From contig OZ038378.1 in assembly GCA_964036045.1 (NCBI GenBank), positions 29,946,001 to 30,010,000 of the forward strand: a stretch of DNA of 64,000 nt, in the 5' to 3' direction. Below are positions 1 through 44,239 of this stretch, piece after piece (position 1 is the stretch's first letter; each line of letters opens with the position of its first letter). This stretch comes from Eutreptiella sp. 'Long Island Sound 2002'. Lineage: Eukaryota > Protista > Euglenida. The position numbers and the translations under genes are program-made. The notes below the pieces were generated by a model. That model was not told the origin of the DNA. It saw nothing but the letters and a program-made list of their open reading frames with translations, and did no database searches.

Positions 1-891
1 GGGACCACACACAGGCATGTGCTACTGATTTTCTTGCGCACAATACTTGTGGCACACGTGCCAGTAGTGCAACCACAACAACCGCAAGGTTCGGCCTCAC
101 CATGCATCCTTGGGTCAGTTACCACCTCTCCCTTTTGCAAGTGCACTGCCACATGAATGCGCATCCTTGCCAAAGCAATGGCCGCTCCACAAAAGAAACA
201 AAATTATGTTGCTTCCGCGGGCCGCACGTTGGTATGTGCCACACCAGTGCATGGCTCTGCACGCAACCGAGGACAATTTGGCACCTTTGCGGTTTTCACA
301 AAGGCAGATAGGGTGCCCAGTGGAATGAGCCAACAACCATCGGCATCCATTTGGGCATCCAAAAAAAACGACATGCCCATTCCGAAACTCACATTGCGGA
401 CCACACCGTCCCGTCCACCGCAACAAAATCGGATCGTTGGTCATGGCGACAAAATGAAAAAATTGACCTGTTACTTAGGCGTCACAAGTTGCCCACCCCC
501 CACCTGGCGCTATGGCCCACGGAAGTCCATGTTGTAATGAGGGGAAAAGTATGTGAAAAGGGGTGTTATTTTTTGGGTATCCAAACCCCTCTGGTGGCAA
601 CATGCAAAAACAAGGTGTGTATTTCAAATATATGCCATTATTTGCATTTCTAGAAACACACAGATTTTCAAAATAAAGACATTCAATCCCCAAAATATAG
701 TGTTGTTTTACATTTAGACCACTGCATTCCAGTGGGGGGGGGGGGCTGCCTATTTTTCTCTCCCCTTTGTTCGAGCTTGATCACAGAACCCCCCTATACA
801 CCACAGATGAGGGAACCCCAAACATACCTTTCATTGAAGCACACAGAAAACTATCCCAAAGCATGTACTTGTATTTCCTATTTTAACCAAC

Positions 892-1215
892 CTGGCCGAA
901 ATTTCGGCCAGCTCTTCGAAAAATGTCCAAACACATGGTCCTATTTGACAGACAGGCCTAAGCTGGCCGAAATTTCGGCCAGGTCCATCGAAACTCCGAA
1001 TATGATCACTGAAATGGGTACCTAAGACAATAGACATGAGCAAGGAACACAGGAGCAGTGACATTTGAACAGGGTGTGCAACATAATATACTCAATTACA
1101 AGCAAATACTTGCCACCTGACGAATCAAAGCAGACTTTTGCAGTGCCTATGGGGAAACACAATAATAAAAGGCGGAAGAGGCTGAGGACTGCATGCTGGC
1201 CGAAATTTCGGCCAG
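892..1215. repeat. Cluster of 20-bp palindrome CTGGCCGAAATTTCGGCCAG (892, 963, 1196)
   Basis: Three perfect copies read directly; first spacing 71 bp. Confidence 0.95.
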
Positions 1216-1254
1216 ACTTCATACTGACAGGCAATATAAGCAGCAGGACTGGCA

Positions 1255-3844
1255 TTAGCGCTTGCGCAGACCAGATGCACGGGGCTTCTTAGCACCTGTG
1301 TTAGGAGGAGGCTTGGCAGGGGCTGCAGCACCAGGCTTGGCAGTGGCAGAGTTCTGTGACTGTGTGTTTCCACCCTGGGATGGTGAAAAATGATTCACAA
1401 AAGTATTCATACCTTTGCCAGTAGGGGCAACAGTGCCTGAGGAGGAAGCTGGGGTGGCCTGAGCGCACTGCGTGCCACTGGGTGAGGGGGCAGGGGCAGT
1501 TTTGGGTTTCTTCTTTGGAGTGTGTGTCTCTGGTTGCGACTCTGCCTCCCCATCTTGCTCCTCAGGATCCTCATCTACATACCTAACCCCAGAACAATCC
1601 ACAGGAAAACCTGCCCCCAAGTCGTGGTACACATCCTCCCATGACTTGGGGGGGGGCACGTGTTGGTGTTGGTGATAGCTGCTCTGATGGACTGAACAAA
1701 CTCATCAGGCACAACAGTCTCCTCACCCAAAAGGGCACACACAACATTACAGTCCTTGGAAAACCTGGTAGACATCATGCTTGCAAAATACACAGACAGA
1801 GTCCCTAGCAAAAACCAGTTGCCTGCCCGTTCTGGGACCGGAACCAGGCTCAAAAGAAATGAGAATATCTCAACAGGCATCACAGACGACATGGGTCCTT
1901 CAGTAAAAGCCACGTAACGGGGCAGCCTGTTATCAAAGGCAGTGGCAGAACAAACGGAAACCAGATGGGACGTAGAAGTGTACAGCGGGGTCTTGCTTGA
2001 CAAATTGTAAATTGCAACATCACACTGATACATATCCTTAGCCACAGTGGCCTTCAAAGCAGCAACAGTGGCTTTCACATCAGCAGACTCACCCGCAATG
2101 AACACAGGCACACCGGACAAAAGCAGCTGCGCAACCAGGTTATGCAAACCAGCTGTATAGAGGCGGGGCACCTCAATGACACAAGCAGCAAAGGGCAGTG
2201 AGCTAATGATACTGGGAAAAGGGACTCCACAACGCATTGCCATCAGTTCCACACGGCCTGACTCTGCAATGAGTTTGCCTGTGCTTGACTCAACGAGGGA
2301 CTCCCTAGCACACTGGATACTGACCAGACCAGTATCAGATTTTTCACAAACAGGCTTAGCAACAGGCTTCTGCAACAATCCCCGCAACCCCTCATATTTG
2401 GGTTCCTTCCAAAGAGGGGCCTTAATTACTGCTGACCACGGGGGCCAGGGGTTTTCTTCAGTCCAGGTCCAACTGCCATAGGCTACCTTCAGGTGTGATG
2501 TCATAGCGCGCTGCCTTTTGGCCATCTCGATAGTACCAAGTGTAGCTGCAGACAGGTGGTGTCACAGGGTGGGCTCCTATTGTGCATTAATTGAACGACA
2601 CACAAGCTGGCCGAAATTTCGGCCAGGTCGGTCGATTTATTCGAATACAAACCCCTGTTTGACCAAAACATACCTCTGGTGTTGTTCACAAGCCCATTGG
2701 TAACCGCCTCGGGATGAAGAATGTGCCAGGACCACATCTGGGCCTTTTTAACATCTTTTATAATTTTTTTGAGACCAGGTAGGGTACTTTTTGTCCCATC
2801 CATGTAACCTACGATGTCGCGAAGTCGGTCAGGCGTGATGCCTTCCACTTCCTTGAACGTACCCAGTGCGGGATGTAGTCCACGCTTTTCCATGGCTGCC
2901 ATGGCGTCTACTGAAGCAAGACCCACAAATTTCACCAAACGCCCAACGCCACCCCACCGTTTGGCAACAGCACTCTGCACAGGAGAACATGTGGAACACA
3001 GAAGCTGGCCGAAATTTCGGCCAGGTCGATCGACAAAACCGAATTAATAAACGAAACACACCACAGTGCCTTCCTCGGCAGTAACACCACACTCTTCAAG
3101 CATAACAGTAATGTGACGGTACAGGGTGTACTCATTGGCATCCTCATCCTCAAGCCTATCCAGGAGTAGGGACATTCGCTCCGATGTGGTGGATGCTGAG
3201 CCAGCAGTGGCCTGGATTTGATGTAAGCCTGCAAGCCGGCGCCTAGTCCGCAGGGGGCAGTCCTGTTTGACTTCATAACCACCAAATACCAGGGTCCAAT
3301 CCGGAGTCTCCATATTTTTCATCTCAAATTCGGTCTTGTGTTTTTGGGCAGCAGTGTAAACATGCTGACCCCCCAACAGAACCCAGCGAGTGGCTGTGCA
3401 ACAGGAATATTCGTAACAGCAGGGTCGAAAATTCAGACGCGAAAACGGTACTATCGAGAAGAATACCACAACACACATACGAGTGACTTTATAAAAAAGA
3501 AAATCCTGGATGTAATCCACAGGCGGGGCTGCCTTCAGATCGTCGTAGCGGCGTTGCACGCGATCATCCGAAATCCTACGGACCTGCCCAAATTTTCGGT
3601 CGTGGTCGATAATAATCTGATCCCACCGAACCTTTATTTTCGTCGTTGACGTAACCCAGTCGGATAACTTGATGGAGGATGATGAATTTTTCTTTGGTGC
3701 GGCCTTAGGCTTCTTTTGAAGTCCCTCTGTGCTCGCCTGGTCCTCTTGAGACTGGGATTGCACTTGAGATTGCCCATTGTCTGCTGCAGGCTCACCATCT
3801 GGCGAAACAGCCATGTCCTGTGATACCCCTCCAGGCTCAGTCAT
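1255..3844 (-). CDS. ParB/Srx-like N-terminal domain protein, about 762 aa, 4 exons (3481-3844, 3062-3393, 2674-2974, 1255-2545)
   Basis: Three GT-AG introns (3394-3480, 2975-3061, 2546-2673; donors GTATGT, GTGTGT, GTATGT) join the ORFs in frame. ParB-like motifs VRWDQIIID..KFGQVRRI and WVLLGGQHVYTAA, then PLRTRRRLAGLHQ. A +1 shift is needed at the G9 run 1648-1656. AG acceptor 11 nt before the ATG. Confidence 0.7.
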
Positions 3845-3963
3845 AAAATAAAGGGCTACAGGGCAACATTTCATGAAGGGGAGAGTTCCCAGATAGCAAA
3901 TAACAAGCACAGATCAACCAAAAAAGGACCAAAACGGACTGCCGGACAGGAAAATCGGATAAC

Positions 3964-4122
3964 CTGGCCGAAATTTCGGCCAGCACTGCTCTGCATGTCA
4001 AACCACTGTGTACAAATACCATTCTGAGAGGCTGGCCGAAATTTCGGCCAGAACCTTATGTCATTTGTGTTCTGGGGGTAGCCATATGACAAAACAACAA
4101 GTCTGGCCGAAATTTCGGCCAG
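3964..4122. repeat. Intergenic cluster of 20-bp palindrome (3964, 4032, 4103)
   Basis: Three perfect copies, spacing 68 and 71 bp, between the transposase end and the ParB-like start. Confidence 0.95.
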
Positions 4123-4214
4123 AAAAACATGAAACAGCAAATAGACACACCAAAATCACTGGCAATGCGTGGCAGAACCCATACCACAGTGACAAACACA
4201 GCTGCAAACAGAAA

Positions 4215-6435
4215 TCAGTCCCAGTCCTGGGTATCCACACCGATGTGTTCCGCCTCATCTAGGGCTTCAAAGGAGGCAACGCTGTCTGCATCACAATCAA
4301 TATCCTGGTCACTATCACAAGAGTCGACAGCAATGGAATCATCAGGGGCGGGGGGGGGGGGGGGTACTGGGTGGGGGGGGGGGCGGGGGGGGTACTGGGG
4401 GGCCTCTGGCTCGGGGCTTCGGGGGTGGCTTTGGGGGCAAGGCAATTCCACCAGGAGCAGCAGTAGCAGCAGCAGGCGGTGCACGGTTGGCAGCACGAAT
4501 AGAAGCATGTGCAGTACGCAACACCCCTTGCTCGGCAGCAGTGCGGGCAGGTGCATTTGTCTGTAAAAAATCCTCAACACCCATAGGAACCCTGGTACGC
4601 GCAACCAGATTTTGGATTGCATGCAACGGAACCACTTTTAAACGGTCTGTGGTGATTCGTGTCCTAGACATGGTACCGGGGAACGTCAAATCCTCAACTG
4701 CATCCAGTCTTCTCACCTCAACTTTATAGTCCGGAACGGGAACACAAATGGGCAGGCTCTGTGTATGGGCTGTCAGGATGAATTGTTTAAGATTGGCAGA
4801 GAACATTGCCACGGATCTCTCAGTCAGCACACCACGCAAAACTTTCTCTCCCGGTTGGACAGGGGGAAGTGTCAGAAATAAATCAGACAACTGTTGGACA
4901 CTAGTACAGGCAGTGTTGCGGCGACAGTGGGCTGAGAACCGACTCAGAAGTGCCTCACCCAGCTCCTCAGAGTGGATACACCCTAGGGAGGCGGAATGCC
5001 ATTGACTCCAAAACAAAAGAGCAACAGCGGTGGTTTTCACATACTCCGTGGTTAACTGTTCCTCGGGCTTTAGGATGTTCAGCATGAGCAGTAGTAGGGA
5101 CATCTCAAGTGCCTGCTTAGCTACAATACCGGAACCTGCCCCCCGTCCCTCCCAGTTGCACTCACGAACCAAAGTCCGAATGCTGAAAGCAGCTGGACAG
5201 TATGTGTACAGCAAAGCCTTAAGGGCTAATAACATACGCAAACCCTTGCGCTGAATGGGTGTCAAGTCCCGCTGGCTATTGAGCAGGGAAGTGACGCGCT
5301 CATCTAGTCTGCCTCTATTGGACGATGTGGCTAGCATGAGTCCAAGCAACGTCTTTTCCATATGGATGACCTTGACCTTGCGAGGGAGGATAGACCCAAC
5401 CTGAAGGCTGTTCCCATGCTCCAAAAACTTAATGAACGGCGGGAACGCCCTGTAGATCAATTCAACGCAATACTTATAGCTATGCCATAGTCCGTACACC
5501 AAAGGAAAACCGAACAGTAATTGTCATACATTCCAGGGAACATAAGCAGCACCATAACACAGCTTAAGTAGGGCAAAGTGTATTTTCATGTCCACAAGCA
5601 GCGGAACGCAGTGTCTGGTGCGGTGTTCCACACATGACAAATCAACCACGAGTTGCAAAAGCTCTTTGTGTGTGCCGGAGCGGAGCTCAGACAGGAAAAA
5701 GGGTCTCCAGTTGAGGGAACGGACATTTTTTCTGGCAATATCCAAAGGAGCACGAACCCAAACTCTCTGAATACCTTGGTTGGCAACATCAATACGATCA
5801 AACAATGCTCTATGTGAGGGAAAGATGTCATCAGCAACCTTTGGTACCCTGGCCTCAATTTCGGCCAGCTCCGGCAGACCCCGGTATGCAAGTAGGGCAG
5901 TAGTGTGCAAAACAGCAACAGCTGTGCAGTTTAGGGTTAAGTCGGGTGAATGGGGATCAGCTCCCGACCTGTAACGCCTCAAGTTATCAAACCATATACA
6001 AACTTGCCTACGGTGCATGGTGTTCCACAAGTTGTGTGCTGCTAGTCCAGCACGATGGTGAATGGACTCCTGCTTAGTGTTACACTGACCAAGGACTCCT
6101 ACCTTACGGCGTTGGCGGCAGGACATAATACCCCAGTTGTAACCAGACCCACAGTTAGAGTATGGGAGGGCCATACGGCGCAGCAGGCAGTATAGGGCAT
6201 GGAACTGTGACAAAAATGTCATGTACCATCGTGGGGGCTTCTTCTCAGTGGCGGCAGCCTTCAACTGTGTCAAGGAGTACCGGCTCCTGCGATTCTTCCG
6301 CAACAAGAGGCAGAATTGCAAAAGCTTTTGCAAAGTCCCACCACGTAATGCATTTCGCAACAGCCCTTTGGCTGTAGTAGCAAAAGCACCAGTAACTGCA
6401 GCATGTACAACATTGACAGTAATAGCAGAAGACAT
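4215..6435 (-). pseudogene. DDE-type transposase, Academ/DUF6589-like, about 740 codons, one nonsense codon
   Basis: ORFs 5524-6435 and 4342-5502 are in the same frame, separated only by TGA at 5524-5526; this aligns to Arg in the 40-42 kb paralogue. Motifs IWFDNL ... LLVDMKIHF ... VYGLWHSYK ... HSEELGEALLSR. The acidic C-terminus (to 4215) is reached by a frameshift in the G-run near 4345-4400. Confidence 0.7.
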
Positions 6436-6506
6436 TAATGCTGAGACAAGAAAACAGTTATGTAGGAGTGTATGGTGTAATACTCATGAACAACGACAAT
6501 TGCAAG

Positions 6507-6807
6507 TTGGCCGAAATTTCGGCCAGGTGTGTTCAAAGGGGAAATAATTGCTTAAATGTTCAAAAATAGGAAAAGCCGGCCGAAATTTCGGCCAGACCGC
6601 CCAAAAACCAAAATATAAGTGCTTGAATAGTGAACAGACCAAAAAGCTGGCCGAAATTTCGGCCAGCCCTAAGAAAAATGAAAATAACTATGCCTATTCA
6701 CCAGGAAACCAAAAAGCTGGCGGAAATTTCGGCCAGAAGGGTCAAAAACTGCATATACACATAGTTGTTTGCAATGTTACCCAAAACCTGGCAGAAATTT
6801 CGGCCAG
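6507..6807. repeat. Regularly spaced array of five 20-bp palindromes (6507, 6576, 6647, 6717, 6788)
   Basis: Period 69-71 bp, with 49-51 nt A-rich spacers; one perfect copy and four with one mismatch. Confidence 0.95.
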
Positions 6808-7391
6808 CTTCAGAAAAACGTCAAATACAACACACTAGAAGACGGGGATACACAAGGCTAACACATCAACACGTATTTCAACGGGTGTCACACAGCTCTG
6901 CCAACAACTTTGGTCCCATACGTCAAACAACATACTCAAAGTAGAAATGTAGAATATTGTCAAATCGCGCGTGTACGGGGTCCTAGAGGGTGGGCAACTT
7001 GTGACGCCTAAGTGTTACGGGGATGGCATGTCCTGTCGCAAGCGCCTCCTCAGTGGTACCATAAACCCGTGCACCGTCAACCAGGGATGGATCTAACTAG
7101 GGGGGTGGGTGTCCCTCCCCCCCCCCTTGTTGTGACGAGGCGTCACGATATGTGTCACGAAAAAACCCGGTCACAGATTGAGCCACGCAGGGTACCAAGA
7201 GGCAGGCAGCACACCCCTTCCAGAGAGGCATTCAATGCAAACCATTGCATAGTCCAACAAACAGTTTTTTTTTGTTTCTTGCTAGTACACTAGGGTTCTT
7301 ATTCACTGTCACTGTGCACCACGGTTCTTATTCACTGTCACTTTCACTGTCAGTACCACTTTCCTCGTCACTGACACTAAGGGCGCTTGAG

Positions 7392-9700
7392 CTAGAAAGA
7401 GGACAGGGAGCTGCCTGAATCTGAGAGCTGTTCCAGGTTATCAACATACTCCGCAGTTTCTGGCACAAGGCGTTCCCTGGCTTGTCCTTTTCCCTTGTCC
7501 TTTCGAGGCTTCCTCACAATTTGAGAAGATCGCCGCCGCCGCTGTGCCGTGCTACCCCATGACCGAGCCACTAACTCATACGGGTAGCCATCGGCATCAA
7601 CATCCTCGGCCCCAATTAAATGCAACCGAACCATGGGCCAGCTCATTCGGTTGCGCAAGGCTGTCATGATGCGGTTCAGGGTTGAAATGGCCCTCTCCGC
7701 ATCATAGGATGATGGTGAGGCAACCGCCCCATACAACCTCAGGGACATGGGCAGGCTTTCTATGGCTACCAGTGCCTGCCAAAACTTAATGAATGTGTCC
7801 ACACCATTCATCTGTGACTTGTTTGCCTGAGGAAGATCAAAATACCTTTTTTTGGCAAGCCCAAAATGCTTGTGAGCGCCATACAAATTAGGGCAGGCCA
7901 GCCCCCATTTTTTTTTCTGATGCAACCACCTTGTCCATCTCCTCTGGTGTCACTGTTGCAATTTGCCAGGTCCTGAAATCTGCAACTTGCAGCTGGGTGT
8001 ATGCCTCATTTTGGAAGCTTTCCTCTTGCTGTTGCAATAGCTTTGTCAACAGAATCGTTTTCGTCACATCAGCGCCCCCGACCCCTTTACTGTCCAACAC
8101 CCAGCCATGCAAAACCGCCCGTTTGACCTCTTTTCGCACAACTAAATTGTGACGCAACCGCCTCTCATATGGACCATGTTTATTTTGGAGTTCACGCAGC
8201 TCTTCTTTCACTGTGCGTAGCACGCTCGCTATTCGTGCCGCACAGGCATTCCCTTGTTGTCCTTCAAAAGAAAGCTGCAACAGGGATGTCAACACGTCTT
8301 GCGGCACTGCAGTGTAAACATGGAATTTTAGGGAGGCCAGAAGAGTGACAATGACATACAGTTTTTCATGCTCTGTTTCTCCTTTTTTTGTGCCTTGGAA
8401 CCCGGTTTCAACTTCGGGGCTGTCATTTTTTTTAGTGCACGCAATTTCTTGCTCGGGACCTTGTGTGTGGCTGCAGCATTGGAGAGGACAACCTCTCTTG
8501 ATCAAGCAAAGGGTGGGCCCAACCCACCGCTGTACAACCTTTCCCTGCCAACTCGCCGATTTCTCATTTTCCTGCTGCATCAAAGCATCAACCTGCCCGG
8601 CGACAAGGTTACTTTTGCGCAGCATTGCGCTAAGGTTGCGCAGCCCTGTCAAAATCTCACTGTGAAAAGCCAGCCCCTCTATAGCCGTATGCACACTGGA
8701 TTCACATTCGTGGGCCACATCGGTAAACTGCCAACAATCAACGGCGCCCAAAGCCTTCACTTTAGCACTGAATCCAGCTCTGACGCCGGTCATTGCACTA
8801 GCGTTGTCTGTAGAGCAAACAACTAATTTACGCAAAACAGCTTTCACATCTCCAGGCTCAGACGACGCGTGTTGCAAAAGCCATTGCAACTGCTCCTAAA
8901 ATCAGGCCGCCAGCCGGTCTGCACTTTGGGGCTTTTCTACGAACTCCTGACTGTCAACTTGAAAAAAATCTTCAATACTACGGGTTACCAACTTGTCGCA
9001 AGTGTACTGTTCCCGATAACATATCAATAAAGCGACATTTGACTATATCGGGGGGGGGGGGGGCGCATGGCCTTTTTATGCGCCCCGTCTATTATCAACC
9101 CCCACATTGGCGTGTCCAACAATCCCGTTGCTGTGATGGACCGTTCCCTGGAGACAATGTGGTTCATCAGCTGTTGTGCGTGCTTACGGCCACTACCGAA
9201 CACAGATTAAAAAACAAGGCGCATCACAGTCCTGTGGCAGGGTAACCAGGGGAGTGAAGTCAGTGTCAGGCCTCGTGTGTTTCAACGGATGCACCGCAAT
9301 GCGCAAGTTGCCAATGTCCTGCTTCCGTTGCCAATCCTTTAGAGGAGTCTCTGCGTCACATCCCGCTGCTGCTCTTAAGTGGGTTGTGCTCTGCAGCCCA
9401 ACAATCTGTGGAAACCATGGTGGCACAACAAGCAGCAACTAAAAATGGGCCTGCACGCGTGCCACAGCACAGAAGCAGTGCACCCGGCTGATGTTGTGTG
9501 CAGCACGAAGCTGTTTAGCGGCTGCGCGAGCATCATTGAGACCACAGGCAGCAGATTGCAGCACAGCCTGCACGACGTCACTGAAATTCACCTCAGGAAG
9601 CACAGTCTTGACGCACAACACTTGAAAGCTTGGCACAGGACCCAGAAAGCCACGAGCACTCCCTTCAGACAGCAATGGTGCCAGTGACTTCCCCATAATG
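7392..9700 (-). pseudogene. Degenerate hAT-family transposase
   Basis: WGLIIDG (first D), VCSTDNASAMTG, DVAH (CxxH position), and C-terminal dimerisation-like SSYDAERAISTLNRIMTALRNRMS. Multiple stops and frameshifts; termini not found. Confidence 0.75.
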
Positions 9701-11275
9701 ATTGAATACTGCTTTACGTCACTGGTTAGGTGGGGTTTCACAGGTGGCTTGGTTGTCCTCTGTGCAACATACGTGTCGTGCACCTCCACACAGACCGCAC
9801 GTGGATACTCCTTCACCATGACAGCCGCAGCCTTCTCGGCAGCTATCTTTCTTGCACTTGTGACCTTCATATGGGGCTCGCAACGGACGTGTTCCGTGGG
9901 CACGTTTGGTTTTTCATGGTGCACCGTTGACGGCGGGGATGGATCTAATTTGTGCGTCACTCAGGGGCTGGGGGTGGGGGGTGGGGGGTAGTGAATTGTG
10001 ACATGTCACAAAAAATACAATAGGCCATAGTGGGAAAACGGCTTTTCTGAAAAAATTGTGACACCCAAAAGACTTTGTGGTACTTCCTGAGGGCAGTGGT
10101 ATTTCTGAGGGCATGTGGGAAGGTTGTGGAATTGTCATGTTTGTGTTTTTGAGCTTGCTGTTTTCTGTGACAGTTCTAGTTTTGTGACATTCTGATTGCA
10201 CACGCAACATAGAAATGAGACACGGTGTCAACCGACACTGTGTTCTCTGTAGGCTCCAATGACTGAAGATATTGACAACTCATTCGTGTGCTGCATCTTT
10301 CTGACAGCCTTTGTCACAGTTCTGTCATGGGTCGAAAGAAAGTGGATTGTCAGTGTGATCCGCCGTGTGTTTCTGCCGCGGCATGTCGACAAAAAAGGAG
10401 CCGTGCAGGCCGTCGCGCCGTGGGTGCTGTGGGTGCAGCTGTGGTCGGTGTTGGTGCTGTTGTTGCAGCTGCAGCTGCTCTAGCCGCCAGGTCCGGACTG
10501 CAAACGCCTATCAAGCGGCCTGCATCACCGACACAAATGGCACCTCCTCGGAAAGCAACAAAACACAGGAGCCTGTTTGAAACATTTCAGGCACAACAAC
10601 CAAAGGCTCCTCCGATAGTGAAGGTGCAGGATGTTGCGCCAGCTCTGCTGTGGTTCCGCGGTCACGGTGCATTTGAGGGGGACGCACTTGCCACTGTGAC
10701 TGCGTCTTTATCAAAATTGCAATTGTGATACAATGCAACATTGTTTACATTTGTGGGGGTTTGACCACACCGGGCGGTTTGTGATGTGCGCCGCAACCGA
10801 TCGGTTGACGCATGTTCAACATTGCCGTTCAAATACTCAATGACAAGTTGTGTAATATGCACGGTGTGCCCATTGGCGCAGGGGACATAGGCTCGATTTC
10901 GGTCACAACCATGACAACACAGCCACAATTCCAGGGAACAAGCATCGGTAGGATCGCTATCCTCCATTCAAGGCGGTCCTTAACGCAAAAAGTTGTTCCA
11001 TAACTTGGTATTTTCAAAAGAGCCCGCGGACAGTACATGTCTTCACCCCGGTGTTCCCAACTGTTCAACCATGAGTCCCCAGCCCAAAATTTGTGCAAGC
11101 ACACAACCATATGATCCTAGCCCCACATGTGTTGAACGATAGCATCCGAACCGTACCTCACACCCTGCACAATTCAACATGAACAAGAGCAATGTTGTTT
11201 TCAATCAAATGCAGTGACACAGCGTTCGACCACCCACATGTTCCATTGCCGTTGGCACAGCTCATAACAAACCCT

Positions 11276-12358
11276 CTACAACTGGTACAACCTCTGGAAG
11301 TGCACCGTGACACGCTCCATAAGCTCACCCTTCCCCCCGCTGACACTCAAACCATGCTTCCTACAAATGGCCTTAAACTCAACTTTAGTCCAGTCATGCA
11401 ATTTCCCCCTCTCCATTGCCTTCAACACCGCCTCATCCACATCATACGCGAACACCAACTGCGCGGCAGGGTTAGAAGAGGTAGAGGGGACAGCTGATGG
11501 GTTACAAAGGTCGGAAGAGGAGCTACTAGCAACTTCACCTGGCTGCTCCAAATCCTCGTCCTCACTATCTTTGTCCTCACCCTCCAACCCAACCCCATAC
11601 ACATCGCCAATATCGGCGTGACGAGTTGCCCTCTTCGGGACAACCCACAAATCTTGAATGTTCAAATGAACCTCTGCCTGAGCATCCTCTTCGAAAGAAA
11701 TTGGCAAATCCTTGAAAGCAACAAACCCAAGCAAACCACCATCTTCCACCTCAACCGCATGCCCTTGCTTCCGTTTGCGCGGGCGGAAAGGGGTCTTCCG
11801 GAGATCATGAAACACCTCAAAGGGCCCCCAATCCTCTGGTGCCTCCCCATTGCACCTTACCCAAAGTGTCTCACACATGCACTCCGTGCTTTGGCCAAAG
11901 TCAGTAGCCGTCACGTAGCTAAACACTCTACACGAACACGAGCTTGCCTCAACCCAATCCTCCGCTGTAGCACTAACATCCCACTAAGTTCCATTGAAGC
12001 GTGTTAGGACATCTTCAATCAGAGTGCGAAGAAACTTCATCTGGCTACCCTTGATGAGGCTACTCCCTACGTCAACACCCAACGATTCGTCCCTCCCCGC
12101 TGGAATGACATGACGCATGGTGTGCAACAGCTGTGTGCACATCACGTTCATCAAACCCTCGACGGCGGCGACTCGTGCCCCCCTGGTCGCTTGAACTTTC
12201 TTGTTTGTGGCACAAACCACAGCAAAAGCATCACAAAAAAAAAACAGCCGTGAACTTGAAAAGGGGGTGCGAAAGTGCATTGAATAAGTCCTAGGCCTTC
12301 TCCCTACGCCCCAGGTCAGCCTCAATGATAATGTACTCGGGTAGGTGTAGGAGAACAA
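11276..12358 (-). pseudogene. Disrupted ORF ending in a SAP domain
   Basis: ORFs 11984-12358 and 11276-11926 are in frame across one TAG. Acidic linker, then WTKVEFKAICRKHGLSVSGGKGELMERV, a SAP-type pattern. Confidence 0.55.
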
Positions 12359-33552: not shown

Positions 33553-35380
33553 CACGGGGGGGGGCGACCCCTCGGTTCTGGACGCCAACTACCCCCCCAA
33601 CTAACTGTTGGCCAGAGGCCCCTTGGGGGGGGTTCAGGGAGGGCGAATGGGGGGGGGGTATAGGAGGGGCTGGGGGGGGGGGGTCCAGGTGGGGCGATTT
33701 GGGGTGTTGGGGGGGGGGGGGCACAGGCTCCCCTTACCTCCCCTTGCCCTCCTCTAACCATACCATCACCATAAACCTAACCCTAACCTTTGCAGCCACT
33801 TGGTTTGGCCATGCCAGCCATGTTGATTGGGTTGAACAAGATCCCCCCAATTAGGTTCATGGTTGCTTTTGCCACATTATTGCTCTCCATTTTGGACCCC
33901 AACACTCACTTTGACCCTAGCCTAGGGTGAGAGCCAGGGCTAGGGTTAGGGCTAGGGTTACCGAGCTGGTGGAACCAGTCTTGGTTTTATAACCCTTTTT
34001 AGTGTCTAGGGTGGACCTACCAGGTTTAGCAGCAGCAGCAGCAAGCAGCAAGCAGCAGCAGCAAGCAGCAAGCAGCAGCACGCGCGAAATGGGTAAAAAT
34101 CAGATTTCCGTCGTGGTGCTTCAGATTCGGGTGAAATTTTGGTGGATGATACCTATGGGTGTGAAGTACAATCACACAAAGTTTGAGCAAGAAACTCAAC
34201 GGTGGCGGCCGGGAACGGGATTCGCAAGTGGCGGACCTCAGTTTCAAAATCTGCAGTTTAGGGCCAAAAACAGCCATTTTTGGGCCAAAAATGCCCTGGA
34301 ACACATTCAAAACGGCCAAACGAAGGGAAACGGTGGGTACACTCCACGTGCCGCTTGACTTCCCCGTGTCAACGAGCTCTTTGCGGCCCTCTAACTCCAT
34401 GATATGCCGCGGAAGTGGCCCAAAAAGGCCCCCAGAAGCTCCAAATGCCGACAGCCACAAACCAAGAATAGGCCATATCTTTGGCTACATGGCTCAAAAT
34501 GCGATTCCGAGGGCACCTAATCCACCCGCAACCCCCCACGTTTTGTGGTTTCCACCCCTCAGAATTGCCCAAACGGACGCCTAGACCCCAATAACTAGGC
34601 CCACTAGGCTGTGGCAAGCTGCAAGCTCAAGCCCAAACAGGTGGGTACCCAAATGGGTCAACAGGGTCCGAAAGGGGTAAAAATGTGACTTTCCGCAAAA
34701 ATGATCCTAGACCATGTGCGACGCTAAAACAAGTGTTTTTGGACCGTTTTGAGCTTGTGGTGGCCCATTTGGGTCGTCCAAAAATCCCAAAATGCCTTGA
34801 AAATGGGCTGTTTTGGGACCAAAAATGGGTCAAAAATGGGTCAAAAACACATTTTTCCAAAACTCATCGTAGACCATTTGGGGTGCACAAAAGGGTGAAA
34901 TGAGCCCATTTTGAGCCCATTTTGGGGCATTTTGGCCCCTGAGAAGTCCAAAAAGCCTTGAAAGTGGGCGTCGTGGTGATGGGGTTCAGGTGCATTTCAC
35001 TTTGTCAAGAGCCATCAGTGTGTGAATCATTCTTGATGTCCCTCACCATTCATATCTAATGTTCCCTCCCCCACCAGCTCGGTCCCAATATTCAGTCTTG
35101 ATTAGGGTTAGGGTTGGGTGTAGGGACAGGAGCAAGCTGAGGGTTGGGGGTGGGTGTTAGAGTCAAGGTTGGGTTTAAGGATAGTGTTGGGGTGCAAATT
35201 GGACAAAATTTTCCTTAGGGCACCTTTGGTGTTCATGGAGCATCGGGCGCCTTAGGCGCCCATGGAGGCCTGAGGGCGACACCTTTGGCAACTAACTGTT
35301 GGCCGAAGGCCCCTAGGGGGGGGGGGGGGGGGGGCAGGGGTAGTTGGCGTCCTAGGACCCGCGGAGTCGCCCCCCCCGGG
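33553..35380. mobile_element. Second copy of the telomere-repeat MITE, interrupted by a nested 1.1-kb element
   Basis: TIRs C(A/C)CGGGGGGGGCGAC..GGACGCCAACTAC, with 8-bp direct repeat AACCTGCC at 33545-33552 and 35381-35388. Confidence 0.75.
33960..35083. mobile_element. Non-coding element with 13-bp TIRs ACCGAGCTGGTGG inserted in the TTAGGG-like core
   Basis: Inverted repeats at 33960-33972 and 35071-35083. The sequence is absent from the 18.3-kb copy; no clear TSD. Confidence 0.6.
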
Positions 35381-35422
35381 AACCTGCCATTTCTCGAAAC
35401 GTGCACACAGCTGAGGTAACAC

Positions 35423-35578
35423 CTGTGGTACGCTCCTTCAGAAGGGTATTCACAGCCGGGATGAGGAAAGCAAGGGTCTTTCCAGACCCGGTCTTGGCCT
35501 GCCCCACCACGTCCTGCCCATACAGCAACGCTGGGATGCACTTCTGCTGGATGGGGGTCATAGTGGAGAAGGGCAACC
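35423..35578 (-). CDS. DEAD-box helicase exon 2
   Basis: [37 protein letters not shown] (Q motif and motif I). Acceptor tttcag, donor GTGTTA. Confidence 0.93.
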
Positions 35579-37829
35579 CTGAAACAGCAGGGCAAGTGCG
35601 GCGTGGGACATGTGGTACAAGCAGCCCACATGTGCAATGTTGTTCCTTGTCTTCCCTTAGGCCAGGAGAACACACAAAATAGACAGCAGAAGACACATGG
35701 TGTACAACACCGGGTGCTTGGTCTGCGCAAATGGCCAAATAGTCGCACTGCACACGCACTTTGCTCCAGCTCCCCCCCCAGTCCCTCACGGAGAGGCCAT
35801 TCAGGTGTGGTGCACTCTGGGCCCCCTCGTCTACGCGGGCTGTAGCACCGCAGCTAGCACCGGTGGCACCCAGGGCAGGGAAGCACTCTCTGTGCCCTGG
35901 GGCCCCTCCACCTGCCCGGGGTATGCCACAGGCTGTGGGGAGCCAGACCCAGTCCATGTGGCAGCACCACCTGCGCCGAAGGCAGTCAAGTAGTGCGGGT
36001 CTGACCCCAGTCATGCCGCGTACCACCGCCTTCCTGTGCCGGCCGGCAGTTGTGGAGCAGTTGGGTAGCTTGTCCTTGTGATGTGGAGGTTGCGCTCAGC
36101 GTCAGGCTCTCCAGCCTCCCTGCTGGGGCCTGGAGCACCAGGCACACACTTCCCCGCGCCATGCGCGCAAACGCTGACCAACAGTGGAGCAAGCACGTGT
36201 GCCACAACCCACCCTCCCCCCGCTCAGACACACAAGGGCACATACACACAGGCACAGCAACATCTCCCACCCGCGAGGGCCACTGCGGGGTCTGGGGGCA
36301 GTCAACAGTCCGGCAGGCCTTGTGACCGGACACGGCCGCCCAATCCCGCAGGGAAGGGGTCGCAGACCGTGAGTTGCCAACCAGTGAGGCCTTGACCCAA
36401 CCCAACCCAACCCAACCCAGCTCAAAAGAGAGGCCATTCAGGTGGTGTGCCCTCTGGGCCCCCCTATCTACAGCAGCGTCACAACAAGGTCATCCCCGGC
36501 AGGTCCTCAGAGCAGGGAAGTGCTTTGCCTGCCCTGAGACCCCTCCAACTACCTCAGTGGCAGGCACAGGCCATGGGAAGCTCGCCCCAGCTGACAGGCA
36601 AAACCACCTGTGCCAACTGGCAATCACGGAGTGTGGAGCCTCCCCAGTCGGACCTGGAGCCCCACCTGCCCCCGTGCAACAGCAGTCGTAGGGCGGCACG
36701 GTAGTATGTCTTTGTGACCTGGAGGTTGCGGTGCCCTGGCCCATATCTCCCCTGGTGGGCTCAGCGTGTCAGGCTCCCCTAGCCTCCCCACTGCGGCCCA
36801 GAGCACTGGGCACACACAACCTCTCCAAGGCACCCACAGTCACACACACAGGCACTATGATGGCGTCTCCTGCTCACCAGCGCCACGGTGTGGTCTATGG
36901 CGGCTCTACCAGCCCGCTCAGCCTTGGAACCGGACAGCCAGGATTGGGGACCAGTGCCGCACAGGGAAGGATGTGCTGGCCTGCAGTCCCCACCTGTGTG
37001 AGGCCTGTCACAACCCAAACCCCCAGCTGGATGGTCAGAGGGTAAACCACGTCGGTTGGAAGGCAACCAAGGGTGGGTTGATGGTAGTCAGCACAGTCAC
37101 TGGGGGCGGTCCATGATGCAAAAAACAAAAACCCTTCCTCCAGAATTGCCCCTAGTTTCTAGTGAGCAGTGGGGCACTCCTGACTCCGGCATATGGCAGC
37201 ACTGTCGCGCAGAGGTAAAGCCACTGCAAGGGGCATGACACAGCTCCTGTGTGGGTGGGGGTGGGGGGCATAAAGCAGCACAGCCCATGTCACAGGGTTG
37301 AAAACTTGCCTGTGGTAGTGACGTGCCGGGCAACTGCAGTAGGGCGGCAACCAACAGTTTTTGGAGCGTGACTGACGACCGTTAGGTGACAACTGACGGC
37401 GGCTCAAGTCTCTGTCAACCAGCAGAACGCATGTTGCATTGGCACGCCTGAAGGGGCACCCAAACGCGTTTATGTGGGCAGAAGGGCCAGGGCTGTCCTG
37501 AATGGAACAAAGCAAACAACGGCTGCCCTCTTATAGCACATGATGATCAGCAAAGGCGATCGATTACTGGCCAAGCGGCGTCAGTTGACCATTGTGTACC
37601 GTCGGTTGAGAACCCACCACCGTGGGTGAACCGCCATTCTGCCACCCAAGACCTCAGGCCGTCCTCGGTCAACAAAAAGAGAAGTAACTCATTCCTAAAG
37701 GACAGCCTTGAGAATGGCAGGAAAGAGGGTATGGCATGCCTGATCTCCGTAGAATTACCAACCGCCAGCCAAACCCCCACCCTGTGCAGCATTGACCCAG
37801 GGACAGAATCATGACAGAGGGAGTGAGAC

Positions 37830-37899
37830 CTTGGATTCCTTTCTGCAGATCCGGGTGCAGCTTCAGCGAATCAAACGTCTGGGTCGCAGGGTCTGCCAT
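37830..37899 (-). CDS. DEAD-box helicase exon 1
   Basis: MADPATQTFDSLKLHPDLQKGIQ (Q-motif Phe). AG acceptor 7 nt upstream of the ATG; donor GTCTCA, phase 1, joins exon 2. Confidence 0.85.
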
Positions 37900-38225
37900 T
37901 GTGAACCTGTTAAACAAATATGGACACAACCTGAAGAGAATAGCGTCTGTGGGGGAGCCCTCGTTCGTCACTGTCACCAGAACAATGACTGCCAAGTCCA
38001 ACAACCAACCTCTGGTGGGGCGGCTCATTTTGCTGCCCCTCTGAGAAATGTTAGACCCAGCCTCGTTCAAAGGAGACGATGTAGACAGCAAATCCGTTCG
38101 GTACGAGCTGCATGTGTTGGCAGACAAGCAAAAGAAGCCCAAGTGGGCACCATGTTTAGCTTTGTGCCATTCATGTTTTGGGAGCTCAACACCGCCGTCG
38201 AACCGGTGGACTGCGGTGTTGCTAT

Positions 38226-38860
38226 TCAGATTGTGGGATACAATAGATTGCAGTTGGCCTCATGCTGAATACCCACAAGATGTGCAGTAAGAGGCTCGGG
38301 TAGTATGCCGAGGGCAAGGATGAAGGTACCAGGTAGTCCGTCAACGCAGAGGTTTGAATGGACTTGTATGTAGTGCCTACTCAGGAACAAAGTGGCAAAT
38401 GTTTTTGTGATCAACGCTCTGCTATGGTGGGTCGGTGGGCGACACTGCGACGGATTCTTGCGAGGCGGGGTCGCTGAACTCGTCGTGACTGACCGTACTT
38501 CAGCTCCTCATCCAAAATAAGCTTGCTGACATGAACGTATTTCCTGGCAATGATGGATGTTCTAACTTGCTGAGCCTCTGTGTCTGCACCCACCAAGATG
38601 CACGGCCGCGATTTCATTTTGGTCCTGTCCTCCTGCTCCTGCTCATCTTCCTCCTCTTCAGATTCAAAACTCTCCTCCTCCTCCTCACCAAAACCACTTT
38701 GGTCACCATCAGCATCTGCTTCACCGCCAGAATTGTGCCCCGTTTGTCATCTTCCTGTTATTCACCATCAACGCCACTGACACCCGAGTCATCTGCAGGC
38801 ACTTCACCAGATTCCGTTGTGTGGCCTACTGCCTAGTCCGGGTGCTCAGGCTCCACATGC
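38226..38860 (-). pseudogene. ParB-like gene remnant of element 2
   Basis: After an acidic N-terminus, KYVHVSKLILDEELKYGQSRRVQRPRL aligns with KIKVRWDQIIIDHDRKFGQVRRISDDRV of element 1. PEPLTAHLVGIQHEA aligns with PLRTRRRLAGLHQIQA. Confidence 0.7.
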
Positions 38861-39756
38861 GGATGACAGGGGTCCTCAATTTTACTTGATCCTACAGAGA
38901 GCAAGCAGGAGCCACAAGTAGGAGAAAAATAGCCCAAAACACCAAGAAATAGCCCGTCCGAGGCACCTTTTGGAATGGTGATTCGCTGTCAACAGTGAAA
39001 GTGTGTTGTAGGCAATTGGGTTCAAAGCAGTAGGTGTCTTTGGTTATCAACAAGGCACTAAGTTTCGTTTGTCACTATCACGCCAGACACTGGGTTCACC
39101 TTGTTTTGGCTATTTTCAAATTCCTTAATTTGTTGTTGAACGCAAGAGTCAGAGCAACTAGCAGGTCCTGAAACTGACATTGTGTACCATGGTGCTGCAA
39201 CATAGTGACATCTACGTCTCATTTACTTGCACCGGTTCCTTCTGCCAAGGGATGCACAATAAAGGCGCAAATTAATCTTGCACTGGTGCAAGGCTACCAT
39301 GAGTGATATCATGCTGGCACCTTTTGAATGCGCGGTACATGGACAACAGACCCACAACGGGCAGGGGGGGAGGGAAACCATAAGCGTCATGTACCACGCG
39401 CGCAGAACGTTGCACTGGATGTTATTCAGCGTATGCACCGTCCCCCATTTTGGACCCTTGTTTCCCAAGGGTTTCCTTGTCAACAGTGAAAGTGCTCTGT
39501 GATTGAATGCTATTCGTGTCATTATGATCTACTCACCATTGCATAATTGTGCTGTAATACATTCCAGCCTGCTTCACCTTGTGTTTCACAGTTGACATTG
39601 AAAGTCACTCCCTGTCCCCCGTCCGAATGGCAATTGCACTGGACACACAGGCATCAGCAAACCCGGGGTACGTGGACACATTGTGCGGCCGCAACCATTG
39701 GCAGTATGACAGGTCTGTTCGCCACTATACATCCGTGTTCCGGAGCATCACCAGCC

Positions 39757-42157
39757 CTACCCAATTAAGATATAGTCGTCGTCATCGCTTTCAGAATCAA
39801 CATAGCACAACCAATTGTCACCCAATGCCACGGCATCAAGGTTGACATAATCTCTGGAGTCCGATTGAGACCCGTTTTGGTCACCAACGCCACCTGCTCT
39901 TTTGCATTTTCTAGGTACCTTTTCCCAAATGGGCAGTACCAACGCCATAGCATCACGTGGTAGCATTCCGCGTAGGCGTGCGGCTGTTCCTGCATAGTCA
40001 TCAAAAAAGGAACTGTAGTCACGACCATGGGGCGGTTGTTGGTGCTAGATCATCTGATCAGCTACAGCCCGGCGATCTGCCTTCTCACACGCCTTGACAG
40101 AGAGGTAAAAAAGAGTGTGAAGGCTTTGGTGCAGTAGGATATACTTCGACTCAACCAAGCTTGTTGAGTCCATAAGGGCAGGTGGAAACTTGAAACTGTC
40201 TGGCCAAATGTTGGCACCTGTTACACAAGCGTCCTTAGGATTATCCTTCATCTCACCTGTTCTAATATCTACAAATGGGGCCGTGCCTAAGGTCAGACAG
40301 TGCAATAGATTTTACAACCTACCTTGCACCGTTTGGACACAACCCAATGTTATATTGGGCTTCTGCTGAAACGTGGTTCCTTGTGCAGCCTTTCTCATGG
40401 TTAACAACACAGACTCGTATTGCTCCAGTGCGGTAGCACTGAGATCATGCTGTGATGCTTTCACAAGACGAGACAGCATAGATTCCCCTTTTTCTTCAAC
40501 ATGTGCAGTACCTGGCAATGCATCATGGAACGAACTCCACAGAAGGAGAGCAATGCGGATCGTGTTTTGATAGTTGCCGACACTACGTGTTGGCTTGATC
40601 TTCCGCAGCGGAAACAGGCCGCATTCTAAAACCTTGCGTGCTGCAACACCAGTGCCACAGGCCCGATGTCTCCTGGAGCAGTAACGCACCATTATCCCTA
40701 ACTGCAAGACAGCAGGAATATAAGACTGCAATAATTCCCGCAGGGCCTCCCAACGCTCCTTTCATAGGGAAGTTTCACTGTCAACAGTGAAACCCCGGAA
40801 GCCACGGTCGAATTGAGACTGCAGTGCGGGATACGCAAGGTAGCACGAGAGAATGAGCCTCTCTAGGACAATGAGAGGGGGGTATTGGGACACCCGTGTG
40901 GCAGTTGGATCCATTAAGAAGCAATCATACCCCATGCAGATAAAAACAGGTGAAAAAGCCTCGTATAAAGCGGAGACACACGCCTTGTATGCGTGCCAAA
41001 TCCCATAGACAGGGCATATGTCACGGAGCGCACCGCGTACTAGGGAAGCAACATGCTCCCTATTGTATACAACCTTCGCAACCCTCCACCATATGTTCAT
41101 GTCACAAAGTAATCCCTTCGCTGGGTTCCGGTTACCAGGATTGTCTTGCAATCACTGCACCAAAGCGCCCCCGAATCCCGCCGTCTTGGTGACATTGATG
41201 TCCCATAACCCGTATGGCTACCATGATGAAGTCCTGGGGTTGCCCCGGCGAATATCCAACGGGCAGCGAAGAAGACCAAGGGACAGTCCATCCGATCCCA
41301 GGTCCTGCACAACAGTCAAAAACTCAGCAACCGAGTCCCACATATGCAGTCCCACGCCCTTGACCCGTGTTGTCCATTTCTCTGCAGAAGGCCACCTAGC
41401 GTACGACAATCTCCCGACAGACCTTTGAGGACAGCGACAACAGTGCACGACAAGGAGATGTCCCGTGGTCCATCCGGATTTTTGCTGTACCGGCTCTTTC
41501 AAAACTGGTCTGCCCATGTCACATAGCATCCTTGTGTCATTTCTTCGCGGATGGGCTCTTGTGCAAGGGCAACCCGGTTGGTCAATGGTGGTTCCCGATG
41601 GAGTATAAGTCCACTTTTCCGCAACTCAAGCCGCTTTTCCTTGGTCACTGCTGTTAATACCCCTGTCCTGGGGACCGTTTGTGCCACTGTCATTGGCTTT
41701 GCCAGCACCAGCATGCAGCTGAAGAGCTTGAACGCAGCAAGCACAAAGCGCAGTAGCAATTGGTTGGACCCACGACTCGACCAGTATTGCTTTAGTTCCG
41801 CTATACTTCGTCTTGTTTGAGGATTCCGACGCAGCTCCAGGGCCATCTCCACAAAACTCAAAGCTGGTCCGCCCCCCAAAGCACACTCCACCAGTGAGTC
41901 CCCGTCTTGGTACATGTTAGCCCGGTCCAGGACGTCATACAACCTCGAGCACAAGTCTCGTAGACTGAATGGGGAGGCAATGCTGTCAGTCGGAATGCCC
42001 TCTGAGGCGTCAAAGGCAGATCATATACAGACAGAACAAGCAGACAGCATTCAGTGGTTTCATAGTTGACAAGAAAAGTTGGTTGTGAGAAGGTGTCAGG
42101 TGGCACAACAGACTGGCAGAACTTGTGCAGAGGGTGAAAGACAACGTGTGGTGCCAA
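39757..42157 (-). pseudogene. Transposase remnant of element 2
   Basis: LVECALGGG..LRRNPQTRRSIAELK, VTWADQF, RCPLDIRR, LLCDMNIWWR, VYGIWHAYK, HVEEKGESMLSRL and an acidic tail are all collinear with 4215-6435. Several frameshifts. Confidence 0.8.
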
Positions 42158-44239
42158 CAGGAAGTGGCTACGAGTGGTTTCACTGTTGAGAGTTAAAGTC
42201 CTTGGGATCCAGTGCTACGCATGCCTCCCACCTGAAAGGCAGGTGGACAATAGAGTGAATGCAAGTACATTAGGGGGGCACAACGTCAATAAGATCCTCA
42301 CCTGGCACCCCACTCTCCCCCCATGCACCACAACCACAGGGAAGCCACAAGGACATAACGGATCTGGCACAACTCTATTGATGCCTCCAAGTCCTGGTGG
42401 GGTACTTTTCCTACCACTAGGGCAAGAAATCTCGTGTCGCACCACATGGTCAACTATATGCTACAAAACATGTCTACAAACTACCGGTTCGGTAGTACTA
42501 GGGGGCACAATGTTGGTCGGTCTCAGAAATTGGAGGCCCCCGCCCAGGCAGTTCCAGCCCATGTTCTCAGTGTGCAATGATCCCGCCATCTGGTAGTACT
42601 AGTAGTGTACCCCCCCTGCAACGGGGCACTTACCATGCCGAGTGGGTAATTGAAGCTTTACGCTCAGCACAGGACGACCAAGGTGCAGAACACCCCTTGC
42701 ATATCAAAGCCACCCTCGAAGATTTGGGGGCAGCCATTCACCTCTCATTATAGAGTGGCTTGAGATTTCCCTCTAAGTGAGTGCGCAAAACGTTCTTCAT
42801 GTTGATCGATCAAGGGAAAGAATGTGAGGCAAAATCGCACATGATAGAAGGAAACATCGAGAAAGCTCGAAAGGTCCTTCAGGGACACATGCGAATCAAC
42901 AAATCAAGTTGACAAAGCCAAACATCTACACTCTCTTGCACAATCTTGATGAGCATCTAGGTGATACTATCCGACAACAACAAGCTGCAGTTGTACGGCA
43001 ACAACAAGTGCTCGTGGAACCATGAGCCAAAATGGATCGCCAGCTTGCCATTGCAGTTGGCTCTTCACCATTAAAAAAGAAAGAGTGCCATGCACCAATT
43101 CAAACACTCCCTGAAACACCATGAACACCACAACAAACCCATGCCATCATCCTAGGTCTGCCGCAAACTAATACACAACCTGTACATGGCATGAGAGCAA
43201 ATGAACAAATTGCTCACGCAAGAGGCCTGCAGATTGCTGCTTGACTCTAAGCAGCAGATGGCAGCTTGACTCTAAGCAGCAACAACCGATGCTGCGATCT
43301 CTATGGGAGACGCCTTTCCTTGCAGTGCAAAATGTTTTTGTTCGGAATTCCATAGGAATGAAACAAGGGCTGGTTTGAGCGGGGCTTCAAGCGGTGCGGT
43401 GGCTTGGAGGAGTCGTTGGAGGACTATAATGAGGTCCTCAAGGTCTTGATGGTCGCTGATATTGAGCACTTGTTGGGCCATTGGCAAGTCAACTAGGGGG
43501 ATGATTCCCTGGGCTGGCGAATTGTTGCACGTCGCCATTTTGAACAAAGGGCTCCTCAAGAATGTCTTGGCGTAGGGGGAGGCAATTACCCGGGGTAGTC
43601 GAGGTTCAAGAGGGGTTCGGAGTAGAAGTTTCAGAGTGTGTAGCGACCAGTGTATGCCAAGCGAAAGTGTGCAGGGGGTGTGGGGTACAGACCCCAGTCA
43701 CAGATCTTCAAGAGGCGCCCGTAGCAAAAGAAATCAAGCATCCAGAAATACGTAGTAGATCTTGGCGTGACGCAGATGGTCTACACAGTGTTGCTGCCCA
43801 GTAGGGCTGAGGAATGTGTGTGTAAGATTGATGGGCCTCAGTCTTTGCTAGAGTGACAGGGGTGACGATGTCTCAACAATGCTCTGGGGCATGGTCCCAA
43901 GGGAGCGCACGGCCAGAAGACATCGAAAAAAATAGACGCCCAAAAAGTGTTTTGGTGGGGAAAGGGGGGGTCCGAAGGGTTGAGGGGGGCAAACTCATGC
44001 AAAAAAATACATACAATCCAGACCTGGGGGTGGGCTGAACCTTCCCCAAGTACAGGCTTGACCATTGGTTTGTGGTCCCCTCAGCCTCCATACCTCAAGG
44101 CCACATGCACCTCCACTGCCATGCACCTCCACTCTTACTTGGATGTGCATCGTCCAGGTGGGCTTGTAGCGGCCACCGGGCTAAGTATGAACTTGGGTGG
44201 GCGCGCTTTCAACTGGGGCAGCCAGGCTTTTGATTTGAG

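Follow-up and report, generated by a model that had tools for sequence, protein, structure and literature searches.

Lineage-specific palindromes dispersed through an unclassified group of two-gene DNA transposons in Eutreptiella and metagenomic relatives

In the red-algal Plavaka (EnSpm/CACTA) transposons, the accessory protein PAG3 combines a ParB N-domain with a 2-oxoglutarate (2OG) oxygenase, and its gene adjoins tandem inverted-repeat arrays; the authors suggest that PAG3 binds the element encoding it (Petroll et al. 2025, bioRxiv 10.1101/2025.02.11.637652). ParB-like accessory proteins beside inverted-repeat arrays in algal transposons are thus already known, having been reported in 2025. 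The accessory protein of Sola1-1_Ec32 from Ectocarpus carries a ParB-like domain fused to a DNA methyltransferase, in a paper whose text does not contain the word palindrome (PMC12477816). In Arabidopsis, the VANC anti-silencing proteins of VANDAL transposons recognise short motifs repeated in the non-coding DNA of their own family (PMC5735166). We analysed a 64,000-nucleotide stretch from the euglenid Eutreptiella sp. 'Long Island Sound 2002' (GenBank assembly GCA_964036045.1, contig OZ038378.1, positions 29,946,001 to 30,010,000; hereafter the window, to which all positions without a locus prefix refer). It contains two transposons, element 1 (E1) and a fragment of its distant sister family, element 2 (E2), each of which repeats a palindrome of its own.

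E1 is a full copy at 473-7013 (minus strand), with perfect 26-bp terminal inverted repeats (TIRs) at 473-498 and 6988-7013, a 3-bp target duplication (GTT) and 14 copies of the palindrome CTGGCCGAAATTTCGGCCAG. All 14 matches to this motif in the window lie within 892-6807, which bears out the claim of an earlier sequence-only reading that the E1 motif is absent from E2. That reading had listed six sites of a different, 20-bp palindrome in E2, and the motif search returned the same six positions and mismatches. Five matches to TTTCACTGTCAACAGTGAAA with three or fewer mismatches were found in the window, all within the E2 stretch, against a chance expectation of 0.01, and none of 100 shuffles reached six; a looser scan added a sixth at 42058 with 5 mismatches. 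No match with up to 4 mismatches occurred in the window outside E2. The central dinucleotide, CA or TG, is asymmetric and gives each site an orientation; both orientations are present.

The six sites could be compared with those of four further E2-family copies in the same assembly (L013-L016), of which L016 served as the reference. Three copies lie between the two genes, as had been proposed: 38981-39000 and 39472-39491 (plus strand, 18/20), orthologous to the perfect sites L016:7440 and L016:7001, and 39584-39603 (minus strand, 18/20), orthologous to L016:6891. The perfect copy at 40773-40792 (plus strand) is inside the transposase frame, where it encodes FTVDSE, and is orthologous to L016:5690. 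Two copies on the minus strand, the decayed 42058-42077 (15/20; orthologous to L016:4406) and 42178-42197 (18/20; corresponding to ~L016:4292), had been assigned to the 5' end of the element. They do lie upstream of the transposase gene, but not at the end of the element, since its subterminal cluster and terminal repeat are missing here. Each of the six window sites has its ortholog in L016, and in four cases the L016 counterpart is perfect or one base off. The majority letters of the other copies shift the decayed sites toward the consensus (38981 A>T, 42063 T>C, 42194 T>G), and the 18/20 and 15/20 matches therefore represent decay from a perfect family consensus, GTTTCACTGT(CA/TG)ACAGTGAAAC. 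Conservation after insertion was no better than neutral: by hand count, 13 of 120 palindrome bases had changed, compared with ~13% divergence from L016. Such neutral-rate decay is expected for dead copies and is uninformative on function.

The fuller copies revealed the anatomy of the E2 family. L016:3191-10858 aligns with L015:3613-11152 at 88% identity over 7.7 kb. The left end of the family is CTTGGGGGTACGAACCTGACATCC, and its exact reverse complement closes L014 at 11439-11462, giving a 24-bp TIR that L015 and L016 show on the left and L014 on the right. L016 itself is cut at the right, and a comparison of its two ends yielded no inverted repeat. The matching ends across copies give a full length of ~8.4 kb. 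The palindrome, 20-22 bp in this family, occurs 16 times in L016 (9 perfect), 14 times in L015 and 11 times in L014; with the two right-end sites seen in L014 added, a complete element would carry ~18. Some sites form subterminal clusters; others lie upstream of the transposase gene, within a loop-coding segment of its reading frame, at three intergenic positions and in the introns of the accessory gene. In both E1 and the E2 family, the subterminal clusters lie 150-520 bp inside both ends, and along E1 or L016 the largest gap between neighbouring sites is ~1.2-1.75 kb.

A de novo search for repeated palindromes covered all related loci. It showed 13 lineages, five from this genome and eight metagenomic, each repeating a palindrome of its own; the eight loci from outside the genome are metagenomic or transcript contigs. 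The palindrome is TTTCGTAAC-N-GTTACGAAA in L002 (at least 12 copies), TTCGCTCCATGGAGCGAA in L003, ACGGCGAGGCCTCGCCGT in L005, TTTGCGCC-NN-GGCGCAAA in L008, AGTCCGCG-N6-CGCGGACT in L007, TCCGCCCGGGCGGA in L009, ACTTTAACTGGTACCAGTTAAAGT in L001, GGTGTT-N4-AACACC in L004, and CTGGGCGAAATTTCGCCCAG in L019, which belongs to the same assembly as E1 and E2. L018 showed a transposase fragment only and no recognisable palindrome. Locus L017 holds two further related elements beside an E1 copy (L017:11628-14882, and L017:1799-1837 and 4271-4298). The second element of this locus repeats TGGGCACTGCAGTGCCCA and encodes a transposase ~27% identical to that of E1 together with a collinear accessory gene, and the third is a fragment adjoining arrays of CGTACGAA(A/T)TTCGTACG with an 11-bp period.

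The degree of palindrome likeness could be set beside the relatedness of the elements. Copies of the same family, 88-97% identical in DNA, retain one palindrome. E1 and L019 share 42-54% amino-acid identity, and their half-sites, CTGGCCGAAA and CTGGGCGAAA, differ by one identical base change in both halves. E2 and L001 share 33-46% identity, with half-sites TTTCACTGT and TTT(A/T)ACTGGT. Between lineages at ~25-35% amino-acid identity, the palindromes are unrelated. In the two informative pairs, motif type tracks transposase relatedness. The earlier proposal that the palindrome has switched while the architecture was conserved, protein and site co-diverging, is likewise supported by the 13 lineages with their own dispersed palindromes and by the two related pairs, whose half-sites are related.

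At least one palindrome lies within the transposase frame in all ten lineages examined. According to the alignment and the structural model of the homologue P0008 described below, these intragenic sites occupy poorly conserved segments: ~P0008 residues 191-204 in E1, L002 and L004; ~383-401, a loop between two helices of the insertion domain, in L001, L005, L008, L009 and E2; ~456-464 in L007; and the C-terminal tail in L003. In the second element of L017, the site falls within the transposase match. The earlier reading had held the intragenic copies of the two elements to be parallel. The copy at 40773 is indeed in the transposase frame, but its position is not homologous to that in E1; it is that of the nearest relative, L001.

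The E2 transposase is a pseudogene at 39988-42008 (minus strand) with many stops and frameshifts in the three-frame translation, delimited by tblastn with the E1 pieces, P0087 and P0041. It shares 25-30% amino-acid identity with the E1 transposase over 41903-40378, and with other relatives the homology extends to 42008-39988; the best database relative is P0087 (33-46% identity). Among 1.84 billion representative proteins, the 386-residue piece of the E1 transposase gave 503 matches at E ≤0.001, and the full-length homologues, from assemblies and metagenomes, have 650-820 residues. A Pfam scan at E 0.1 gave no match in ten full-length homologues or in the window pieces, including to the Plavaka, KDZ, CACTA, THAP, BED and hAT-dimerisation profiles, and Pfam, PHROGs and Protein Data Bank (PDB) sequence scans of all pieces returned no significant family. 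The AlphaFold2 model of P0008, built from a 61-row alignment, reached a predicted local distance difference test score (pLDDT) of 93. Its best solved matches were the P-element transposase (Z 10.0), Hermes (9.5), Transib (7.8) and RAG1 (7.0), at ~8-12% sequence identity, and the first 36 VIA-align rows, one per PDB entry, were all DDE transposases or RAG1. In the AlphaFold DB, the model matched uncharacterised and DUF6589 proteins. The conserved motifs are WxDN, RVPLD, PLLVDxNxHYR, YGxWHxYK and EExCEAxLSR. The acidic residues D (WxDN), D (PLLVDxNxH) and E (EExxEA) were invariant in nine of nine sequences, the latter two being at least 90% conserved among the 61. In the model, an RNase-H-like DDE fold is combined with a helical insertion domain, and the nearest folds are those of the P-element and hAT transposases. 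Target duplications of 3 bp were found in two independent E1 copies, GTT in the window and AAA in L017. Given the TIRs, these duplications, the DDE fold and the lack of a Pfam family, the elements are TIR DDE transposons of an unclassified superfamily.

The accessory gene is represented in the window by an exon 1 remnant (38432-38870, minus strand), which encodes an acidic tract followed by ...KYVHVSKLILDEELKYGQSRRVQRPRLARIRRSVAH and gives a collinear match to E1 3631-3551. The gene is kept only to ...RRSVAH at 38432, where other copies continue differently. The layout proposed earlier, a transposase gene followed by a ParB-like gene, accordingly holds in the fuller E2-family copies, but the window copy has the exon 1 stub only. 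In L016, exon 1 ends in ...KYVHVSKLIWDEELKYGQSRRVQRPRLARLRRSVAHRGLIEEVRGYLLDRG and is followed by a 133-nt GT-AG intron with two palindromes and by exon 2, which begins DIQLVRGGQHMCAIVKEL... The intron position is identical in E1, the E2 family and L003. Palindromes were observed in accessory GT-AG introns of three lineages (window 2607-2626 and 3005-3024; L016:8048, 8090 and 8576; L003:3721 and 3796); the first intron of the E1 accessory gene (3393-3479, 87 nt, in frame) has none. The gene itself is conserved in E1, the E2 family, L002, L003 and L017b, and the motifs KxGQxR, L(S/G)GQH and PLxTxRxxAG of the E2-family protein recur in E1, L002 and L003. A profile built from these three scored the spliced E2-family domain at 31.9 bits, compared with 7.2 for the best of 2000 shuffles. 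The string LVGIQH at 38229-38339, considered as the second ParB motif of E2, was rejected: family homology ends at 38432, and the true LVRGGQH is in exon 2.

Among solved structures, the top sequence match of the accessory domain was sulfiredoxin, of the ParB/Srx fold (E 0.34 with a single sequence, E 0.07 with a profile), and both alignments fall on the GxH..A motif. The Atlas language-model feature scores of the domain were 0.95 for DUF3723, 0.92 for ParB_N and 0.91 for DUF6551. No enzyme domain (2OG oxygenase, methyltransferase) was detected in the downstream exons by Pfam or PDB sequence match. A protein search with the L002 accessory protein returned only itself, and one with the E1 accessory frame only near-identical copies. 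The E1 and E2 accessory proteins are barely detectable to each other by BLAST and hence diverge faster than the transposase. At best, the product would carry a ParB/Srx domain; it is not a partition ParB.

The dyad symmetry of the palindromes, their strict sequence within a family, the joint change of their halves between families and their confinement, within the window, to their own element fit a dimeric, sequence-specific DNA-binding protein. We think it reasonably probable that they are sites for a dimeric, element-encoded protein, of which the ParB-like product is the likeliest candidate; it would change together with its site in each lineage. The choice of the ParB-like protein as the reader is made more hesitantly, at somewhat less than even confidence; it is favoured because separate TIRs serve the transposase, because its domain appears to belong to a DNA-binding superfamily, and because it diverges faster than the transposase. 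A bound dimer would mark or coat the element's own DNA. It may serve to assemble or compact the transposition complex by bridging distant ends, to mark the element's DNA against silencing, as proposed for PAG3 and shown for VANC, or to control the element's own transcription. With protein and site changing together, each lineage would recognise only itself. The wider generalisation is possible but distinctly tentative: an unclassified, widespread superfamily in which palindrome and reader together would serve each lineage as a private address. A ParB-like protein would load on 10-20 palindromes distributed along the entire element, coding sequence included, and site and reader would switch jointly, giving incompatibility-like groups that prevent cross-talk between co-resident families.

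Several observations weigh against binding by a ParB-like protein that changes with its site. The accessory domain has no Pfam match, and its ParB assignment is below threshold by sequence; the AlphaFold2 model of the domain, from a 6-row alignment, reached a pLDDT of only 47. The arginine motif GERR (GERRxRA) of ParB proteins dependent on cytidine triphosphate (CTP) is replaced by L(S/G)GQH in E1, the E2 family, L002 and L003, and the CTP-clamp chemistry of true ParB is therefore unlikely. No ParA or any other ATPase gave a Pfam match in the reading frames of E1, L016, L002 and L003. The half-sites of L019 agree with the inferred consensus at only four of eight, and the tracking of phylogeny by the motif rests on two close pairs. 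The N-terminal helical region of the transposase could, moreover, equally be the reader. In that case, the transposase itself would read the palindromes through its N-terminal helical/basic region, as subterminal and internal binding sites resembling the repeated motifs of hAT, P and En/Spm elements. The ParB-like protein would then have another task that involves no choice of these sites, for example anti-silencing or the modification of DNA or chromatin. The N-domains of the P-element and Hermes transposases, whose folds are the closest, bind repeated subterminal motifs; the clusters 150-520 bp inside both ends of E1 and the E2 family suit such a role, and short contigs showing only the transposase gene (L001, L005 and L007-L009) still carry palindromes. 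These contigs may, however, be cut before the second gene. The TIRs, distinct from the palindromes, already supply a site for end recognition, and sites running through the accessory introns and the whole 6.5-8.4 kb would be unusual for an end-binding protein. We regard the transposase as reader as rather unlikely, though a serious competitor.

The copies in the accessory introns of E1, the E2 family and L003 and inside the transposase frame would also suit palindromes acting as RNA or DNA hairpins or cruciforms, for example in shaping splicing or transcript stability. However, many copies are subterminal, near the inverted repeats and outside both genes. It is the sequence itself that is kept within a family, not pairing alone; variants break the symmetry without compensation, and the asymmetric centre occurs in both orientations. 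A hairpin role is consequently improbable. Slighter still is the chance that the palindromes arose as selfish or accidental insertions, whether tiny mobile units or scars of repair, that build up where they do no harm and have no role for the element. The intragenic copies are confined to variable loop-coding segments and the others to introns and spacers, as such insertions might be. In the window, however, neither palindrome has a match outside the element that carries it, 13 lineages show this architecture with differing sequences, and the copies of a family have their sites at orthologous positions. The dimeric element-encoded protein, with the ParB-like product as its leading candidate, is the reading we prefer.

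The E2 copy in the window spans 38432-42647 (minus strand), equivalent to L016:3953-7966, and lacks both termini. The limits of 38226-42197 given previously had to be revised to ~38432-42647 on the basis of contig depth, the divergence of other copies and blastn to L013-L016, with which it shares 77-88% identity. Copy number was assessed by aligning public contigs of the same organism onto 37300-43200 and summing their depth. The summed depth was 200-2100 over ~38432-42650, compared with 7-10 in the unique flanks in the same run, a 30-100-fold excess. The contigs aligned to the E2 region were mostly 85-95% alike, and just before 38432 several of them diverge from the window sequence. The contig depth and this divergence show that E2 is one copy of a multi-copy family. 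What remains at 38432-42647 is dead: an internal fragment, truncated at both ends, that makes up about half of a cut-and-paste transposon of a ~8.4-kb family.

Some further features of the two elements and their surroundings were noted. The summed depth over 42422-42618 ranged from 2135 to 11111, far above the rest of E2 (about 500-3000), and a small palindrome, CTACCGGTTCGGTAG, lies near 42481 within this segment, which may be common to a more abundant short derivative or another repeat. In the otherwise unique E2 flank, 37497-37693 shows ~8 times the flank depth and is a small dispersed repeat. At 35352-36026 (minus strand), a 224-residue frame ends in a match to the start of a DEAD/DEAH-box helicase domain (Pfam E 1e-13) and probably represents a host-gene exon. 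In the window, one in-frame TGA (5524-5526) divides the E1 transposase frame into pieces of 303 and 386 residues, and an E1 copy in L012 (9293-11221) has a continuous 642-residue transposase frame. Two E1 copies lie head to tail at L012:3878-14817, the second beginning exactly at the break of the first (the equivalent of window 2306); either the insertion is nested, or the first copy was truncated before a new one arrived. The decayed L019 element adjoins an intact 701-residue frame (L019:12346-14451) for which tblastn detected no likeness to the E1 proteins.

Should palindrome and reader indeed be paired, these lineages would amount to a naturally occurring series of orthogonal recognition pairs of protein and DNA in a eukaryote. 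A clean system would then be at hand for studying self-recognition by a mobile element among co-resident relatives, comparable to plasmid incompatibility groups and to VANDAL/VANC. A large unannotated transposase family (no Pfam match, >500 clusters) from protist genomes and aquatic and sediment metagenomes is placed by its fold near P and hAT, and its ends and target duplication are given.

Comparison with bacterial ParB-parS showed a partial likeness, in the ParB/Srx-like N-domain and the multiple 16-20-bp palindromes. In E2, the seven outermost bases of the arms, GTTTCAC and GTGAAAC, are identical to the half-sites of the parS consensus cited in the sequence-only reading, which had allowed for coincidence. 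The E2 half-sites are 8 bp further apart than in parS and none of the 12 other family palindromes is alike, so we judge the resemblance probably coincidental. Unlike ParB-parS systems, the accessory protein has GGQH in place of GERR and no Pfam ParB_N match, and no ParA was found. The RNase-H-like DDE core and large helical insertion resemble those of the P-element and hAT (Hermes) transposases, the best structural matches, whose target duplication is 8 bp as opposed to 3 bp here. The 3-bp duplication of the two E1 copies, the second gene and the subterminal repeated motifs are features of the CACTA group, from which the elements differ in their termini, ACTTAGG and CTTGGGG. The superfamily thus has a fold nearest P and hAT, with a 3-bp duplication and a two-gene habit in common with the CACTA group.

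A close likeness is to Plavaka and PAG3, which also pair a eukaryotic DDE transposon and an accessory protein having a ParB-like N-domain with inverted-repeat units in the element's own DNA. Here, however, the accessory protein has no detected enzyme domain, the palindromes do not form tandem arrays by the gene but are scattered along the entire element, introns and transposase frame included, and the transposase has no Plavaka, KDZ or CACTA Pfam match. The Ectocarpus Sola1 element belongs to a different transposase superfamily, and its protein has the methyltransferase fusion. In the VANDAL/VANC system, protein and motif reportedly differ between related families. The VANC proteins are unrelated to ParB, the superfamily is Mutator, and the motifs are not known to be long palindromes or to lie in coding sequence, unlike those of E1 and E2. 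What is new here is the unclassified transposase family, the accessory protein without a detectable enzyme fusion, the dispersal of sites over the whole element, introns and coding sequence included, and the series of 13 lineages with switched palindromes.

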